NCBI GenBank assembly: GCA_000708835.1
Contig: DF237676.1
Span: 1 to 39,989 of the forward strand
From: Klebsormidium nitens
Taxonomy: Eukaryota > Plantae > Klebsormidiophyceae
Direction of reading: 5' to 3'
Length of the DNA: 39,989 nucleotides
Positions within the stretch are counted from its first letter, which is position 1. Each line of letters begins with the position of its first letter. Shown here piece by piece: positions 8,380 to 21,048 of the stretch. Below the pieces are notes generated by a model. The model was not told the origin of the DNA, did not search any database, and was given only the letters and a program-made list of their open reading frames with translations. The translations under genes were made by a program, and so were the position numbers.

Positions 8380-13292
<4,913 letters not shown>

Positions 13293-13303: not shown

Positions 13304-13665
13304 CTGCAGAAAAGCCCGCTCTGAAAGAATCTATACCAAGAAACCAAACAACAGCGGATGGACTTTCTGAAAATTTCCAATGCGCCTGTCCCTCAAGAAT
13401 CCTTCAGGCTCAGCTAACTTCCAAGCTTTGCTGATGTCAATGCTTTGACGTGCATATGCATTTCCTGCAAACGTGACCGTGACGATCAGTTTTCCTAGCT
13501 CCGAAGTGGGTCCACCAACTGAAGAATTGCGAATTCTCGACGTTCGCAGTTAGTCGAGAATTACGGTTCTCTGCTAACGAGAACCTAACCCTGTTTCGCC
13601 GCTTTTAAAGCCGCGTCATCGCGACATCATCTTTTTCAATCTGTCGCTCAGCAAGCGCAACTTAC
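13304..13665 (-). promoter_or_regulatory. Putative 5'-UTR intron of KARI
   Basis: An acceptor ttttctgcag lies 11 nt upstream of the ATG. A consensus donor gtaagt sits at 13665 on the minus strand. Confidence 0.5.
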
Positions 13666-13841
13666 ACCCGGGTCAATAAGTTTTGTACCTGAGGTTTTTC
13701 ACGATTGCAAGTAGGATACCTTTTGGAGTGGCGGTTTATAAAATTTAAAAATTCTTAGGCTTCAATTATCCTATTAGTGTGCCCGGCTGAAGTAAGATAT
13801 CTGAAAAGTTGCGAAATTGCTGCCTGAGCTGTCCGTCCTGG

Positions 13842-14026
13842 CCATCCAGCGGGATCTGTAGATGGACTCTGTACTTGATGGACAGCAAGCTGTCTATGTA
13901 GACCGCAATTTGCGGGCGCGAATTCACCATATCGGGATTTTTGAGAACTCGGGGACTGCTGTCCGAGCCGTCCATGCCGTCCATCCAGCGGAATTTGTAG
14001 GCGAACTCTGCACTTGATGGACAGCA
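13842..14026. repeat. 46-bp imperfect direct repeat pair
   Basis: 13842-13887 and 13981-14026 match at 40/46 positions; all six differences are transitions. Confidence 0.85.
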
Positions 14027-14650
14027 CTGCCGTCCAGAAGCGCGCGTTTTGAGGAGCGGATGGGGGGACACAAGCATTCACAGATTCAGCAAGTAGGAAA
14101 TGTTCCAGCTGGTTTCTTCGTTGGCACATATCCTGAGCGGGTAGCGGCTTCCATGTGCGTGATGCCTCCTGCTGTAGACTGACAGAGCTAAAAGTGGGCG
14201 GGCTTTAGAGGAGTTGCAGGGCAGATTGGTGTGGCTTAGGGTTTCCAGCTTAGTTGGCAAACAATCTGGGCAGGAACTGGCATTCTGGACGCTGTGGTGG
14301 CGCACTCTAAAGCGTTCCTGAGAATGCTGTGGACCAGGTAAGTAGCTACCTGGTTGCGTCTACATGCACTCGTAGTGTAGAACAATGTGTCAGGCAGAGG
14401 TTGGCCCAGCCGCTTCTGGACCAGCTTGAAGAATGCAACTGAGCAACTCAGTCTGAAGGAGGTGGACGTGGTTTTAGGGGTTGTTGCGCTGATTTCTCAT
14501 GAGTGCGCACTGATGGGAGTTGCATACGCAGTAAAGGTGCAAACATGTCAGAACTGCGCATCCAGATGTTTGTTGAGACAAACTAGTATTCAATCCTTTA
14601 TGACTCTGGTCTTGTAGGGGCAGGAAAGCTGGTCCTTGAACCGTCTCGTC

Positions 14651-17600
14651 ATGGCTAGAGGCCGGCCTCATGGCCGGTCCAAGTCCGATCACCGGGTCTG
14701 TCAGGCAGCTCGACATGCACGTGCTGCTGAGTACAGAGAGAGGATTGCCATCAGCGCTGAGCAGCAGGAGGCGCGCATCGCTGCTGTGAACGCTGAGTGC
14801 GATCTTCAAGATGCCCCTCAGAAACGAAGAAGCCAGAAGTCCAGTGGTCGGAAGAAAGAGGCATGGACTGCTGGTGCGTCAGCACAGCGTGGGTCTTGCA
14901 AAGCATCTGGGAGTGGAAAGAAAAAGGCAAGTCAGTACCTTGGGGAAGCGCTTGGCAAAGCTACAGAAAGAGGTGAGTTTCTGGTGCATGTGCTTCTAGG
15001 TGGAGGGTTTTGACTTGTCAAGCAGGGGCCAGGCAGAAGCTGGGACGCGTTGCGCTGCAACTTTCGCGTTTATCAGAAAAGTGAAAGGCAGTATGTACTA
15101 AGAAGAGCGTCTTCTTTGTGATGCGCAAATTGCGGTACAGCGTGCGGCTGGCTCGTAACTCTGCCAAGGTTAGTATGGGCTCAGTTTGAAAAGGTTGCCC
15201 CCAGGCCTCCCTTTGCACCAGGAACAATGTGCTTCATCCATAAGTATAATGACTGCTGGCCCTGCAGGGACGTACCACACTTTGCCTCTGCCTCTTTCGA
15301 AGATAAGAGGCGCATTCCCTGTACATGCTGTCAGTAAAGAGCTAAGCAATCTCAGCGAGTACGGCCGTCCTTGCAATGTACCAAGATCAGCCTCTTTCTC
15401 GAGCACGCACCAGGTATTGCATGCATCTCCGAGTTTAGACTCCAGAACCAACCTCTGCCCTTCTTCACTGCAGACTTGCACAGCTTTCATTGCCACGCGT
15501 GCGGCGCTACTGCAGAGTTTGGGTTGAGGGGAAGCAAGGAGGGGGGCATCGTCAAGTACTCGTGCAGAGCGCACTCCACGTCCAATGGTTGCTTTCGAGT
15601 GGACCGAGACCGCGCAGGTGAGAGCAGCCGGGGAGCCTGCTGTTGACATGGTCTGAACTTCATGCAACGCTCATAGCTGCCCTCCCATTGATACAATGAT
15701 CCTTTGAGAAAGACCTCGAGAAATTTACGTGCTCTGTATGCTCTTGCAGATTGGGCAGAGGACCAAGAGCTGCGCCGCTTGAGAGCAGAGGAGAGAAGAT
15801 TGGAAGAGGAGCTGCGAAAGCTGGGAGGGACCTCGTTCGCAGCGGAACCAGCGGCAGGTGAGCGTTCCAGGCGCGATCTGACACCATGGATTGTGCTCTT
15901 ATACTCAATCTGGGGCAGCAAGTTCCCTGTCATGCCTCGAATGCGTTGTGGCTCTTTCTGCTGTGCATTGGACACATGGATCAATAGTGACTGCAAGTCA
16001 ACGCTTCACTGTTCTCGCCTGCAGCTTGGAAAGGATTCCAAAGTAAGGGGGTTTGGGCTTCGGCACCCATGAGCCAATCGCTCATAGGTAAGGCACTTCG
16101 ATAGCAGCTCTGGATCTGCAGTTCGCTCGTGAAGCAGGTGGCCTTCCTCTGAACATGCGAAAATGTAAAGCACTTGGGCTTCTACGACGTTTCTGACATG
16201 TTTTGTTTGGAAATTGCTGGCTGCTTGTGGATAAGGGCAGCGTCGCACATGCAGCATCTGAATGTGGTGTCCTCCCATGCAGCAATGCTACTCACTATCG
16301 GCGGAGTCGAACGCAACCCGGGCCCTACTTCAAAGGAGGTGAGCCTGGACAAGAGGACCTGCCTCCTGCAGTTCAGGGTCCAGCACCAATTGTACTCGAG
16401 CATTAAGGAGCAACTGTGTGATTTTTCTCAGTGTCCATGTTATCGAGAGCGGGTTATACATTGTTGTGCTGATCTTTGCTGTCTCGCTACTACAGGAGAA
16501 AGAGCTGGCTTTGAAGACGAGCTGGCAGGAAGTAGATCCTGAGATTGACTCCGACCTGCTGGACCACCTGGCAAAGCAGCAGCTCACCTTGGAACGCTGG
16601 AGAGGGATGACCGATGACGGCCGCTCTAAGCTTCTTGACCGACTTGAACGCAGGTATCCAGGGCCAGGGAACTGGTTGTTGGGCTGGACTGCGATCTTCG
16701 ATAAAGCTGCGGGTAAGCAGCTCCCTCTATTAGACGAGTAGGGTCGCTTCGATGCAATCCGCTTGGAGTCAATCCGCTTGGAGTCAGGCCTATAGAGGTT
16801 TTCAAGCAGTACGGATAAGGGAACCTTCTGGTGTTGTTCGCCAGCATGTGGGACCGGAAAGCTGGAAGAGGATGGCACGCCAGGGGCCTTTGCTGATTGG
16901 AAGGTCGCTCTTTGGTATTTCTGCTGATGTGATTGTAGTTTGTCCTTGTTTGGTATCAACCCTGCTCACAAGCCGATTTCCTCATCAAGCAGTGCCTTTC
17001 ATTGTTGCGAAGTCTGAACAGGTGCTTCATAGTCTTCTTAATCTGCAATCTGTGGGCTGCTTGTAGCATTTGAGGCTGTTACTTGGTAGGCTTGGTCTCC
17101 AAGTGCAGCGTCAAATGAATTTTTCAGTCATAAAGTTGGTTCCTTAGAGGGGATACATATAAGTTAACCTACACTCAAAAACATGTAGCTAGATGGAAGC
17201 TCGGATAGTATGCTGTTTCTGGAACAAGCTCAACCAGACCAAAAGCTTGATGCGCTGCAGGGGTTCCATCCGGCCATGCTAAAACCAGCTTCAAACGTTC
17301 CACATGCCTTGATACATCAGACATCGGGGTTCTTGCGAAGGGTCTGGTGAAGAAAAGGAGATTGGAGCTTGAGCAAGCAGGAGAAGCGCAAAAGGGCCTC
17401 TTCGAGATTGGTTGGAGCATCCTGCCGCGGGCAAAACCTTTGGGTGTCAAGGATCTACGTTTTCTAGTGCTGAAGGCAGAGCAGAAACTCGGAGTTGCGG
17501 TGATGGGGCGCTCCCATTTCAAGGCTCTAGTAGATCGTGCAGTCGCGCTTATGGAGGGAAAGCTGCCGGGCANNNNNNNNNNNNNNNNNNNNNNNNNNNN

Positions 17601-19161
17601 NNNNNNNNNNNNNNNNNNNNNNNNNNNNNNNNNNNNNNNNNNNNNNNNNNNNNNNNNNNNNNNNNNNNNNNNNNNNNNNNNNNNNNNNNNNNNNNNNNNN
17701 NNNNNNNNNNNNNNNNNNNNNNNNNNNNNNNNNNNNNNNNNNNNNNNNNNNNNNNNNNNNNNNNNNNNNNNNNNNNNNNNNNNNNNNNNNNNNNNNNNNN
17801 NNNNNNNNNNNNNNNNNNNNNNNNNNNNNNNNNNNNNNNNNNNNNNNNNNNNNNNNNNNNNNNNNNNNNNNNNNNNNNNNNNNNNNNNNNNNNNNNNNNN
17901 NNNNNNNNNNNNNNNNNNTTGGGAAGCCTGGGAGAGATTCTTGGAGTGCAAGAGGGTGGTGCAGATCACCAAGGGTTTGAAACGCATCTACGATCGGGTG
18001 AAGGCGAGAGGGGGAGACGATGTGAAAGAGTGGATAGACCAGATGAAAAAGATGGTTTACACAGACTCGTTTGTGGAGTTCAGCCTCACCAACTGGAACG
18101 ACATTGACTTACGGCATGTAGCGGTAGAGGGGAACAAAGTCCGGCCAGCGTACCCGCTAGTACGAGAAGCGATCGCCCACTTTGTGGAGCAGGTTCAAGG
18201 TCGGGCTGTCTTTTACAGTGACCAAGCAGTCTGGGCCGCTTTGTCCCAGGAGCTTGCGGGGGAGCGGGTACCGGCGGTAGCTGGACTGCTGACGGAGCGC
18301 TGCGCCATCGGCGCAATCATTGATGGTCAGGGCTACAAGGCAGTGCTAAAGATGGAGAAGTCGGAGCAAGTCAAACTGGTGTTCTTCGACCGGAATGCAG
18401 AGGCCTCTGCTGTGCTGACCGAACAAGAGGACTTCCGGAAGAGCGGACTTGAAACACGGATTGCTTGCTTCGTGCCTCGGACGCCGTTCTACCCTGCCAT
18501 GGATATGGCCATCGTGGTGTTCAAGAAGCCGAAGAACCAGCAAGGTGATTATCCAAATCCGCGAGCTGCTTGTGATCGCCTTAACTTGCTATCGTTGACC
18601 AGCAGGTGTTACCACCAAGGCTGCGACCGACATCCGAGATGTTGCTAGTTTGTTATGAACTGTCTGTAGGAACCGCGAACTTTCAAGCAGCTTCGTGACT
18701 ACTTACCCAACGTCCTCGATGAGTTGCTGATTGTCAAGACGTGCGGATGCAGTGGTTGCAATCCCAAGGTTGTGTAAAAAGATGGGCTAAATTTGATCCA
18801 ATCTCATCTATGCCGTTTTGCAGGGTTTGTGGAGCGGCTCACGAAAGTTCAAATGACACTGGAGTCAGCGCACGACCATCGTCGCTCGACCCAGACCGCA
18901 ATGCATATTGGCAACGTGAAGCCGTGGCTGGGTGGTGCAGAGCTAGAATCCGTGGACGTGGATTTCTGCTACATCGTGCCGGGTGCTCTTGTCAAGGGCA
19001 GGATTTCACGGCATACCGAGCCAGTAGAGGCAAAGTTGGGGACCACACGGGGACAAGCCGGATCTGTACAAATTGTTGCGCATACTCACATAGAGTTAGC
19101 TTTTGGCCAGCTAGATGGAAAGCTAGGACAGGTGGATAGGTGGCAGCGGGGGGGAAAATAG
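14651..19161 (+). CDS. Crinkler/RHS-like multi-domain effector gene: Zn-finger-like, coiled coil, 2A-like motif, SAM-like, (gap), restriction-endonuclease-fold domain
   Basis: Phase-compatible exon chain 14651-14972, 15474-15617, 15750-15857, 16283-16338, 16496-16712, 17261-18544 (contains the N gap) and 18824-19161. The C-terminus CFVPRTPFYPAMDMAIVVF...FVERLTKVQMTLESAHD...VDFCYIVP fits the P..FPA.D / Q.T...H / F..VVP pattern of Crinkler/RHS nuclease domains. The 18545 donor (gtgatt) is weak and extra micro-exons are possible. Confidence 0.6.
16283..16338 (+). other. Exon encoding a 2A/StopGo-like motif (MLLTIGGVERNPGP-TSKE)
   Basis: catgcag|ca atg cta ctc act atc ggc gga gtc gaa cgc aac ccg ggc cct act tca aag gag|gtgagc. 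It matches LLTCGDVEENPGP of T2A at 10/13 positions, with Gly in place of the usual Asp. Confidence 0.7.
17573..17918. other. Assembly gap (346 N)
   Basis: Run of N inside the long exon of the Crinkler-like gene. Confidence 1.
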
Positions 19162-19819
19162 TTGTACTAGCGAGAGCCGTCAAGCTGCCTTGATTTCAAT
19201 ATGCACGCTCTTGTGTATCCACTTTACTATCTGATCGCAGCCCTGATGCTCCCCACCTTGTGAGCAATTTCGGAGGACAATCTGCTACAGATTCTCCTTG
19301 CATCAAATCAGCGGCGAGTTTTGATTCATTGAAAGTGTCGCTTTTCATGCAATCCAAAGCACGTACTTAGATCACCATGGCATCGTTGCCAACCACATCA
19401 TGCACATGGTATCGATATCCGAGTGAGTGTGCCTCCGCGCGCCCAAGCGGCCATTGCAGAGCAAGAAGGCTGGGTGCATATTTTAATCAAGCAATGATGG
19501 CAAGAGGCCAGTTAGCGCGACCTTACATGGGGCCTCCTGGGCGCACCCCTTTTCGCAAAGGCTATATGCCATAATTGGGTGATATTGTAGCCTCGCGTTC
19601 AGACCCGTAGCGGGTTGTCCAGGCAACCGCGCGGGACGGAAGGGGGGGTAACGTGGCGCAAGGAGATTGGCGATATTTTATGCCGGATTTCAGATGGTTA
19701 GTTGTCCGAAGTTCGAGCTTGAAGTTGAAGTCACTTGAGACTCGAAGTTTGATAAATTAAGCGAATGAAAATCGTCGAAAGGCTGCCAAAGTTCTCGACT
19801 TGCAGTCTTGGCAGACATA

Positions 19820-20145
19820 CAGCATTTTCAGGGCATGCTTCCCGATCTAGATAGGGTGTATTTAGCCTAAACTTAGGCTAAATTTAGTGTAAGTTTAGTC
19901 ACATCACCAGATTAATTGACGTCATCTAAGAAAGTGACTGTAACACGTGGAAGAATATAGCGCGTCGGATGGAACTTGTCCGGTGGTTCTACGGCTCGAT
20001 GATCACCCCTGTTCTACTTTGGCGGTTGCTACTGCGGAAAGATGTTCGATGACGTCAAAGCAATAGCTAAAGTTTAGCTAAAATTTAGTATCTAAACAGA
20101 CCCTATCTATCGATCGCAACCGGGAAGCATGCCCTGAAAATGCTG
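19820..20145. mobile_element. MITE-like foldback element with 25-bp perfect terminal inverted repeats and TA flanks
   Basis: cagcattttcagggcatgcttcccg (19820-19844) and its exact reverse complement (20121-20145), with TA at 19818-19819 and 20146-20147. No coding capacity. Confidence 0.8.
19854..20103. mobile_element. Inner Tourist/PIF-like MITE nested in the foldback
   Basis: Termini gggtgtatttag ... ctaaacagaccc (10/12 inverted match) resemble GGGxxxGTTTAG Tourist ends. TA lies on both sides, with subterminal ctaaa/tttag repeats and an inverted ttgacgtcatc pair. Confidence 0.55.
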
Positions 20146-21048
20146 TAAAGAAGATCTGTACCGTCCAGGATTGCAAAAACGTTGACAATTTGTCGAGAGT
20201 GTGCATGGCGCGCGCCGGGAGCCTGCTGGCTATCAGGATCATCTACATGCTAGCACGCTACTTAAGGTGTAGGATATACAGACGGTCCGCTATTCCTATT
20301 CCTAAGCGCACTGAGTGCACTGCAGGCAGGCTCGTTCATTGGGTGCAAGATATCTCGTTAAACGCGTCCATGACCTGTTATCATTCTCAACAAGCTTAAT
20401 CATTCGTCTCCTTCCGGTCGCGCCTGCCCATTTTGCTTGATGCACGAGTCATGAGAAATTGCAGGTTGTGTGGGCCGCCTTTGCTTCCGCAACGAATGTC
20501 ATAAATCAATTACAACTAGTCTGTCGACGTTCAACACATTGTGCGCGTTTGGCTTGGGATCACGTGCGTATACATATCCAACTCATGTTCAATGCATGCT
20601 CCTTTTTCCCCACTGGTATTAAAACGCTCTCAACTGAACCTCCACGTGTCGCCTAGACATCGAACTGGTAATTGAATAGACCTAGTAGGAGGGCTGTGTT
20701 TGAAGAAGAAGCAACAAAGCCCTACGTGATTTACACTAGTCAGCTGTGCGACTTCTGTGCGACTGTGTCCCTGCCTGCTCTGTTAAGGCCAGGTACACAA
20801 TACCATGGAGCATGGCTTGCTGGCCCTGACTAATTCAAGACCAGGGAATGCTGTGCGACTAAACAGTTCCACGTTACTCCTGATTAAACGGTCTACTTAC
20901 ATCGAATCCTTTGAATCACTCAATGGTCTCCCCACGTGCTTGCTAAACAAGATACGGAAGCCTTAAGAGCCCATCGCCAGTCTACACAGTCACGGACCAC
21001 AAACATCAGGTATATATCAATGTGGAAAAACTCGAACATGTCCGCTAA

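Follow-up and report, generated by a model that had tools for sequence, protein, structure and literature searches.

A putative 2A/StopGo peptide assembled from two mini-exons in a spliced gene of the streptophyte alga Klebsormidium nitens

The stretch of DNA analyzed here, referred to throughout as the window, comprises 39,989 nucleotides (nt) of Klebsormidium nitens (contig DF237676.1 of assembly GCA_000708835.1) and contains a gene whose reading frame carries a 2A/StopGo-like ribosome-skipping peptide ending in NPGP. The gene lies on the forward strand and consists of nine exons and eight introns, with one open reading frame (ORF) from the ATG at 14651 to the stop at 19161; an in-frame stop is present 20 codons upstream of this ATG. 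Its structure was followed with Logan contigs from four runs, each belonging to a different study, which were placed on positions 13600–17560 and, as their joints have GT..AG ends, behave as RNA. After correction for the cut offsets stated by the tool, the joints fall at 14337/14618, 14972/15474, 15617/15750, 15857/16025, 16087/16283, 16338/16496 and 16712/17261. In the spliced contigs, the NPGP motif has coding sequence before and after it, all within a single uninterrupted ORF of the mature mRNA.

The 5′-untranslated exon (13950–14337) is covered by contigs over 13950–14335, which join to about 14618 through GT..AG, so that its 5′ end is a minimum. Exon 2 (14618–14972) contains the start codon and encodes the basic, Lys/Arg-rich N terminus of a leader, which continues with a zinc-finger-like Cys/His module (FHCHAC...YSCRAH...GCF; FHCHACGATAEFGLRGSKEGGIVKYSCRAHSTSNGCF) in exon 3 (15474–15617) and a charged coiled-coil-like segment, EDQELRRLRAEERRLEEELRKL, in exon 4 (15750–15857). 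The exon-3 module is conserved in GAQ93188.1, another K. nitens protein, as IFCHECDSTAEWGLRGSK..YYCELH..GCF. The 2A tract itself is divided over two mini-exons, exon 5 (16025–16087; 63 nt, phase 1 to 1), encoding the upstream half as AWKGFQSKGVWASAPMSQSLI(A), and exon 6 (16283–16338; 56 nt, phase 1 to 0), encoding the core MLLTIGGVERNPGP followed by TSKE. Exon 7 (16496–16712) encodes a helical domain, beginning EVDPEIDSDLLDHLAKQQLTLERWRG.., with which the downstream product would start, and a homologous segment is present in GAQ93188.1. Exon 8 (17261–18544) contains a segment expected to precede a P-loop, a run of N at 17573–17918, and a C-terminal domain (WEAWERFLE..FKKPKNQQ). The last coding exon (18824–19161; GFVERLTKVQ...WQRGGK and the stop) lies beyond read coverage. 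The 18544/18824 boundary and the stop were placed by means of the K. nitens protein GAQ86377.1, since it reads ...KKPKDQQG/SVERLTKV... and so matches both the junction (KKPKxQQG/xVERL) and the entire tail of the gene. In the assembly, the ORF comes to 843 codons, including 116 X from the N run; continuity of the frame over this run reflects the size of the gap and is not to be trusted. NPGP corresponds to residues 224–227, the peptide to residues 213–227 and the wider StopGo tract to residues ∼206–227, and the upstream product, up to Gly226, would have 226 residues, a mass of 24.7 kDa and a pI of 9.8. Pfam searches with each exon piece of the gene, including the Cys/His module, gave nothing above noise. 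A 70-nt direct repeat (13818–13887 and 13957–14026; 81% identity, 139 nt apart) is located at the first transcribed exon or shortly before it and could be a duplicated promoter or 5′-untranslated element.

The original prediction, made from the letters alone, had placed a 2A/StopGo-like motif on its own 56-nt exon, and the RNA joints use exactly the acceptor and donor that it named. The exon reads catgcag/CAATGCTACTCACTATCGGCGGAGTCGAACGCAACCCGGGCCCTACTTCAAAGGAG/gtgagc, with phase 1 in and phase 0 out, and is found spliced in contigs of all four runs, so that its transcription, on which the prediction depended, is borne out. Joint 16338/16496 was present in four of four runs, whereas joints 16087/16283 and 15857/16025 were each seen in runs X1, X2 and X12; no base differences are listed within the 56-nt exon among the contigs of the four runs. 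As to the flanking exons that had been proposed, 16496–16712 does follow directly, through joint 16338/16496, but 15750–15857 is not the immediate upstream neighbor because the 63-nt exon 5 intervenes. This conserved exon replaces the three upstream contexts previously considered. For the first, a direct 15857/16283 join giving EPAAA-, no contig of the four runs supports the canonical version, and the one joint that comes near it, from 15837 to 16285 in a single run, has the non-canonical ends CG..CA and probably derives from a diverged paralogue. The second, a micro-exon reading ALDLQFAREAA, is not used by any spliced contig from the locus. The third, start at unspliced ATGs (16198 or 16285), is not used by the listed spliced contigs and is not needed to account for the locus. 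An unspliced ORF at 16174–16542 (122 amino acids, motif included) was likewise dismissed as a product, given the use of donor 16338 in all four runs. Exon 5 is frame-neutral; exon 6, at 56 nt, is not a multiple of three, and the downstream frame therefore cannot be reached without it, making the core exon obligatory.

The core exon translates as (A)MLLTIGGVERNPGPTSKE, and MLLTIGGVERNPGP is encoded by positions 16285–16326. The NPGP codons occupy 16315–16326, with Gly226 (GGC) at 16321–16323 and Pro227 (CCT) at 16324–16326; from the position of NPGP and the StopGo literature, the bond between these two residues (16321–16326, forward strand) is the one predicted to be skipped. The octapeptide GVERNPGP (16303–16326) is an exact fit to the expanded core that later work names (D/G/C/N)(V/I)ExNPGP (bioRxiv 10.64898/2026.09.24.754024). 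NPGP occurs only once in the six frames of the window, at the above position, and the expanded core would be expected by chance 3e-4 times per six-frame window, or ∼0.8 times per 104 Mb, as computed from the window's own six-frame amino-acid frequencies. Against the T2A core LLTCGDVEENPGP, in the version printed in the tables of bioRxiv 10.64898/2026.06.17.732966, 10 of 13 positions of the exon-6 peptide are identical, as the original prediction had counted. Its reservation that Gly stands in place of the conserved Asp could largely be lifted. Among 131,941 clustered viral ORFs, Gly at this position (p12) was found in 1,207 cases versus 908 exact Asp matches, and Gly and other p12 variants are functional in StopGo cores (PMC12846837). 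GxExNPGP is active in 2A1 of DHAV-1 (duck hepatitis A virus 1; PMC6249498), and the IGGVEPNPGP peptide of a paralogue was classed as 'skipping', as detailed below. StopGo activity is strongly determined by the residues upstream of the core, for which Leu-rich hexapeptides, for example of the LLLLSG type, have been described (PMC12846837). The hexapeptide before the core is here MLLTIG, which is Leu-rich, ends in Gly and resembles such motifs. Because upstream residues are essential for activity, the conserved tract GVWASAPMSQSLIA, supplied by exon 5, is of significance. Judged by sequence, the reading of the exon-6 motif as a true peptide of the 2A/StopGo type, on an expressed exon of its own, is supported.

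The protein encoded downstream of the motif would begin at Pro227 and exceed 600 residues. The 346-nt N run at 17573–17918 sits where the core of a P-loop NTPase would be expected, and the flanks of this gap in exon 8 align to P-loop ORFs of two other contigs, L002 and L123. The segment before the gap (...GWSILPRAKPLGVKDLRFLVLK...MGRSHFKALVDRAVALMEGKLPG) aligns to these ORFs at 36–42% identity, and the ORF of L002 then runs straight into a Walker A motif, GPKGTGKTH, as that of L123 likewise runs into a Walker A motif. With Pfam, the ORFs of L002, L123 and a further contig, L124, gave AAA_22, AAA_16, nSTAND and NACHT matches just below the cut-offs. The NTPase core (Walker A/B) of the window gene is thus most likely hidden in the N run. 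When the C-terminal exon (17920–18543) was searched exhaustively with HMMER, 10 relatives were returned among 1.84 billion representatives, all of them fragments and none extending to the leader. An AlphaFold2 model of the homologous C terminus had a mean predicted local distance difference test score of 65, with the first 210 residues mostly above 75. VIA-align of this model gave a winged-helix-like match to 3h92 (Z 8.2, 80 residues), and STAND proteins and CARF nucleases, including Can2/Cdn1 at Z 6, at Z 5–6. Foldseek gave nothing at E ≤ 0.001; the PD-(D/E)xK-type proteins DXO, MutH, CinB and PA-N appeared only at E 0.3–0.8, and neither tool gave a secure assignment of the C-terminal domain as a nuclease. 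E-R-C and F-Y-x-x-x-D motifs are conserved in the C-terminal domain family, which does not establish catalytic residues. A word-indexed protein search with exon 7 (72 amino acids) returned no candidates within a length range that excluded full-length relatives.

Relatives of the gene allowed the two mini-exons to be compared. The closest HMMER relative (88% identity) is GAQ86377.1, annotated as 'hypothetical protein KFL_002860010, partial [Klebsormidium nitens]', the gene of which starts at a contig end (L001) so that its leader is outside view. A distant member (32% identity) is encoded on the 9.9-kb Logan contig L002, on which ATLLMIGGIETNPGP is encoded 3.4 kb upstream in the same orientation. 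Here too the peptide is divided over two exons, 972–1034 (63 nt; ccgcag/.../gtaagg) and 1292–1350 (59 nt; atgcag/.../gtgagg), with the same splice sites and phases as in the window. The two cassettes translate as ASSESQSLGYWASLPMSQSLLATLLMIGGIETNPGPAVTVE in L002 and AWKGFQSKGVWASAPMSQSLIAMLLTIGGVERNPGPTSKE in the window. Of the cassette codons as far as NPGP, 36 in number, 15 are identical, 9 show synonymous differences only and 12 are non-synonymous, and LL, IGG, E and NPGP are all retained, with every core position kept. Outside the cassette, the enzymatic domains are 32–36% identical, the remaining leader cannot be aligned, and the intron between the cassette exons has only its ends in common. 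A further expressed paralogue, seen in four of four runs, continues from exon 5 with CC ACG CTC CTC ATG ATC GGT GGC ATC GAG, that is (A)TLLMIGGIE, in yet other codons. GAQ93188.1 carries KKGVWASMPMSQLLIATLLNIGGVEPNPGP and shares the zinc finger and the post-2A helix of the window gene. L002 and GAQ93188.1 both conserve the tract GxWASxPMSQxL(I/L)A, which is roughly as long as the exit tunnel, and both keep NPGP, so that the motif is conserved among paralogues, the point by which the original prediction could have failed. Nine synonymous-only codon changes relative to L002, with all core residues kept, support selection on the cassette at the level of the peptide.

In L002 (1847–2356), the 2A peptide is followed by a different ORF, of 169 residues and without a Pfam match, in place of the exon-7 helical domain. 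The modules that flank the cassette on either side therefore vary among members of the family.

Reporter data on relatives of the peptide are available from a screen of 20-mers in HEK293T cells (bioRxiv 10.64898/2026.06.17.732966). The 20-mer of GAQ93188.1, SQLLIATLLNIGGVEPNPGP, is listed in Table S7 in the class 'skipping'. The tested 20-mer closest to the window peptide, SESLIEMLLTIGGVERNPGP, is identical to it at 18 of 20 positions, including the last 14 residues, and has R/G/IR scores of 2.65/2.49/2.77, compared with 2.25/2.54/2.30 for the P2A control and 2.92/3.23/2.99 for the NAGA control. Its green (fusion) score of 2.49 is thus near that of P2A (2.54) and far from that of NAGA (3.23). 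As a whole, the tabulated data on close relatives of the window peptide are mixed.

With these results, we place the probability that StopGo at Gly226–Pro227 truly separates the leader from the payload at roughly 60%. Several observations weigh against it. In the same tables, a close relative, KRSLIAMLLTIGGVESNPGP, was scored 'Falloff Only', and LDARRLLLLISGGVERNPGP, which has the same GGVERNPGP core in another context, was scored 'Nonskipping Only', whereas its GD version skips; the assay is itself noisy, in that a T2A-derived peptide was also called non-skipping. Some of the contigs placed on the locus are 90–95% paralogues, and a few of the joints may belong to sister genes. Finally, L123 (JGI, Joint Genome Institute, metagenome contig Ga0590114_0001472) encodes the NTPase and C-terminal domain at 8562–11425 without a recognizable cassette in the 8.5 kb upstream; the payload is therefore not strictly dependent on the cassette, and the presence of the cassette varies within the family. 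No NPGP was found in L123, L124, L125 or L126, the upstream sequence of the last three being too short to judge.

The non-skipping result for the shared core in another context, together with the heavy dependence of activity on upstream residues, would also fit an inactive relic or ordinary linker, in which case ribosomes would read through to a single fusion of ∼840 or more residues and the motif would owe its conservation to descent, for instance from an exon of retrotransposon origin, or to a structural role. Such an explanation appears quite unlikely. All core positions are kept across nine synonymous codon changes while the flanking protein has diverged beyond alignment, the upstream tract GxWASxPMSQxL(I/L)A is conserved as well, and, in the tabulated scores, the fusion signal is lost in the relatives tested.

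The suggestion in the original prediction that splicing could tune skipping found no support on the upstream side, and the sole alternative joint seen acts downstream of the motif. This GT..AG joint, 16338/17261, was present in three runs; it leaves out exon 7 (217 nt), causing a frameshift and a stop 34 residues after NPGP, so that the isoform would encode the leader and 2A peptide without the payload. Exon-7 skipping at this locus is possible; the joint may instead come from a close paralogue, and contig depths are unable to rank the isoforms. If real, it would provide a second leader-only route beside a translational attenuator, in which most ribosomes would fall off at Gly226 to give mostly leader and only a trickle of a potentially harmful NTPase. 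We consider a role of this kind unlikely. It would be in keeping with the 'Falloff Only' score of KRSLIAMLLTIGGVESNPGP, with the report of the same preprint that many eukaryotic 2A-like peptides lower protein abundance, and with the payload frameshift in three runs. Against this stand the 'skipping' class of the GAQ93188.1 paralogue peptide, the possible origin of joint 16338/17261 in a 90–95% paralogue, the inability of contig depths to rank isoforms, and the conservation of the long downstream ORF and its domains, which implies that translation of the payload must take place. The reading that we prefer remains a separation of the two products by StopGo.

The immediate surroundings of the core recall those of APE-type non-LTR retrotransposons, in which 2A-like peptides are found at the N terminus of ORFs (Odon et al. 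2013, PMC3708506) and in which a Leu-rich stretch is similarly followed by IGG(V/I)ExNPGP. One example, which gives the core a natural precedent, is LLLIGGVERNPGP on metagenome contig L016 (863–3760); it has a 10-residue core, IGGVERNPGP, identical to that of the window and located directly before APE and reverse transcriptase domains. A pattern scan of JGI metagenome contigs (L003–L122) gave at least 118 translated LLxIGG(V/I)ExNPGP peptides, which represent a large reservoir of retrotransposon 2A peptides of the Gly type; none among the matches listed has the WAS.PMSQ context of Klebsormidium. In most of the matches listed, a zinc-knuckle-like CxxC...C segment (VLCSGCDRNLKSGTQC) comes next. 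Such peptides, and the fact that the gene family is multicopy and highly expressed, could be taken to mean that the locus is itself part of a mobile element, a retrotransposon or virus-derived insertion in which the 2A peptide serves as the polyprotein signal of the element. This is highly improbable. The gene's eight introns are spliceosomal and have the canonical GT..AG ends, one of them lying inside the 2A unit, and there is neither a second copy nor flanking repeats around it within the window. By Pfam, no RVT or Exo_endo_phos match was obtained for any exon of the window gene or for its homologues, under conditions in which the positive control, L016, gave RVT_1 at 1.5e-33, and no reverse transcriptase, endonuclease, integrase or capsid family matched any exon. 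Homologous payloads are STAND-like NTPases. In contrast to the retrotransposon peptides, that of the window lies 213 residues into a multi-intron gene, is split over two exons and is followed by a STAND-like NTPase. To judge by these features, the window gene would function as the 2A peptides of retrotransposons and viruses do but does not itself belong to such elements.

Viral StopGo sequences with Gly at p12, such as DHAV-1 2A1 (GxExNPGP; PMC6249498), share with the window the G(V/I)ExNPGP octapeptide and, presumably, the mechanism, in which the nascent chain drives release at Gly-tRNA and translation then resumes at Pro. They differ in that the residues upstream of viral p12 Gly cores are mostly (R/K)DLTxE- or PAPRLV-like, with Pro at p15 (PMC12846837), whereas the window has a Leu-rich upstream sequence of the viral p12 Asp type, Arg at p15, and a spliced cellular mRNA in place of a polyprotein. 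Among cellular genes, a precedent is that of sea-urchin NOD-like receptors, where a 2A-like peptide in an ordinary gene also precedes a STAND-class NTPase (Roulston et al. 2016, PMC4981915). The sea-urchin peptide is located at the extreme N terminus and doubles as a signal peptide (PMC4981915), but that of the window, at residues 213–227 after a 212-residue basic leader, cannot be an N-terminal signal. GAQ93188.1 (KFL_013500020), from the same organism, shares the CHxC...CxxH module, the sequence GVWASxPMSQxLIAxLLxIGGVExNPGP and the helical domain (..DIDxxLLxxLAxxxxxLxxWR..); it is a separate locus with 5 of 20 peptide positions different, and its annotated model of 340 residues contains no NTPase. 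The main text of the preprint that lists the GAQ93188.1 peptide does not discuss the alga, and the preprint gives no account of exon structure, RNA support, payload or family.

Two other features of the window were noted outside the gene. A small element resembling a miniature inverted-repeat transposable element is present at 19818–20147, ∼650 nt downstream of the stop at 19161; its 27-nt terminal inverted repeats (TACAGCATTTTCAGGGCATGCTTCCCG) are perfect, with arms separated by 276 nt, and nested imperfect inverted repeats are also present. A tandem array of ∼7 copies of a 27-nt unit (TCTACCCGTCAGCTACACTCCACCGCT), with identity up to 98%, occupies 9332–9528.

The locus is best described as one nuclear nine-exon Klebsormidium gene with a single ORF containing a class-A StopGo/2A peptide, for which sequence, splicing, frame, conservation and family context are documented here, and for which we infer skipping itself, its efficiency and the roles of the products. 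The 2A peptide is assembled by the splicing of the two mini-exons (63 and 56 nt), a cassette that recurs in the gene family. The steps that follow are proposed from the established StopGo model. During translation, the nascent tract VWASAPMSQSLIAMLLTIGGVERNPG would occupy the ribosome exit tunnel, the chain would be released after Gly226 without a Gly-Pro bond being formed, and translation would in some of the cases resume from Pro227. One mRNA would in this manner yield two proteins, a 226-residue basic zinc-finger/coiled-coil leader ending in ...NPG and a Pro-starting protein of more than 600 residues. The latter would be composed of a helical domain of short length, a P-loop NTPase of STAND-like type (within the gap), a winged-helix-like domain and a lineage-specific α/β C-terminal domain. 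A more speculative extension, which we find rather unlikely, is that the two-mini-exon cassette (63 + 56–59 nt; xWASxPMSQSL(I/L)AxLLxIGG(V/I)ExNPGP) is a portable, exon-shuffled 'protein splitter' that was co-opted from a retrotransposon-type 2A and reused with different leaders and payloads, at this locus a STAND-like NTPase, exon-7 skipping deciding whether payload is produced.

To our knowledge, StopGo/2A is virtually absent from plant viruses and otherwise almost unknown in the plant lineage. Cellular genes are held to use StopGo/2A 'never or only rarely', and it is regarded as a device of viruses and retrotransposons (PMC12846837). Cellular 2A-like peptides, the Gly-type core and, as entries in Table S7 of the preprint, the peptides of this algal family were already known, and the gain at this locus is in that sense incremental. 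New here are the RNA-verified exon structure, the corrected upstream context and the two-mini-exon cassette under peptide-level selection across deeply diverged paralogues, as well as the reading-frame argument by which the core exon is obligatory, the likely payload and a candidate payload-truncating isoform. From these sequences, a streptophyte alga appears to have fixed StopGo in ordinary spliced genes. The family offers a natural system in which to ask why two proteins per ORF would be of use to a cell, whether ribosomes of the plant lineage accept a Gly-type core, and whether such a cassette is able to move from gene to gene. If the portable-cassette proposal is true, this would be a case of cellular, intron-assembled and regulated ribosome skipping in the plant lineage.

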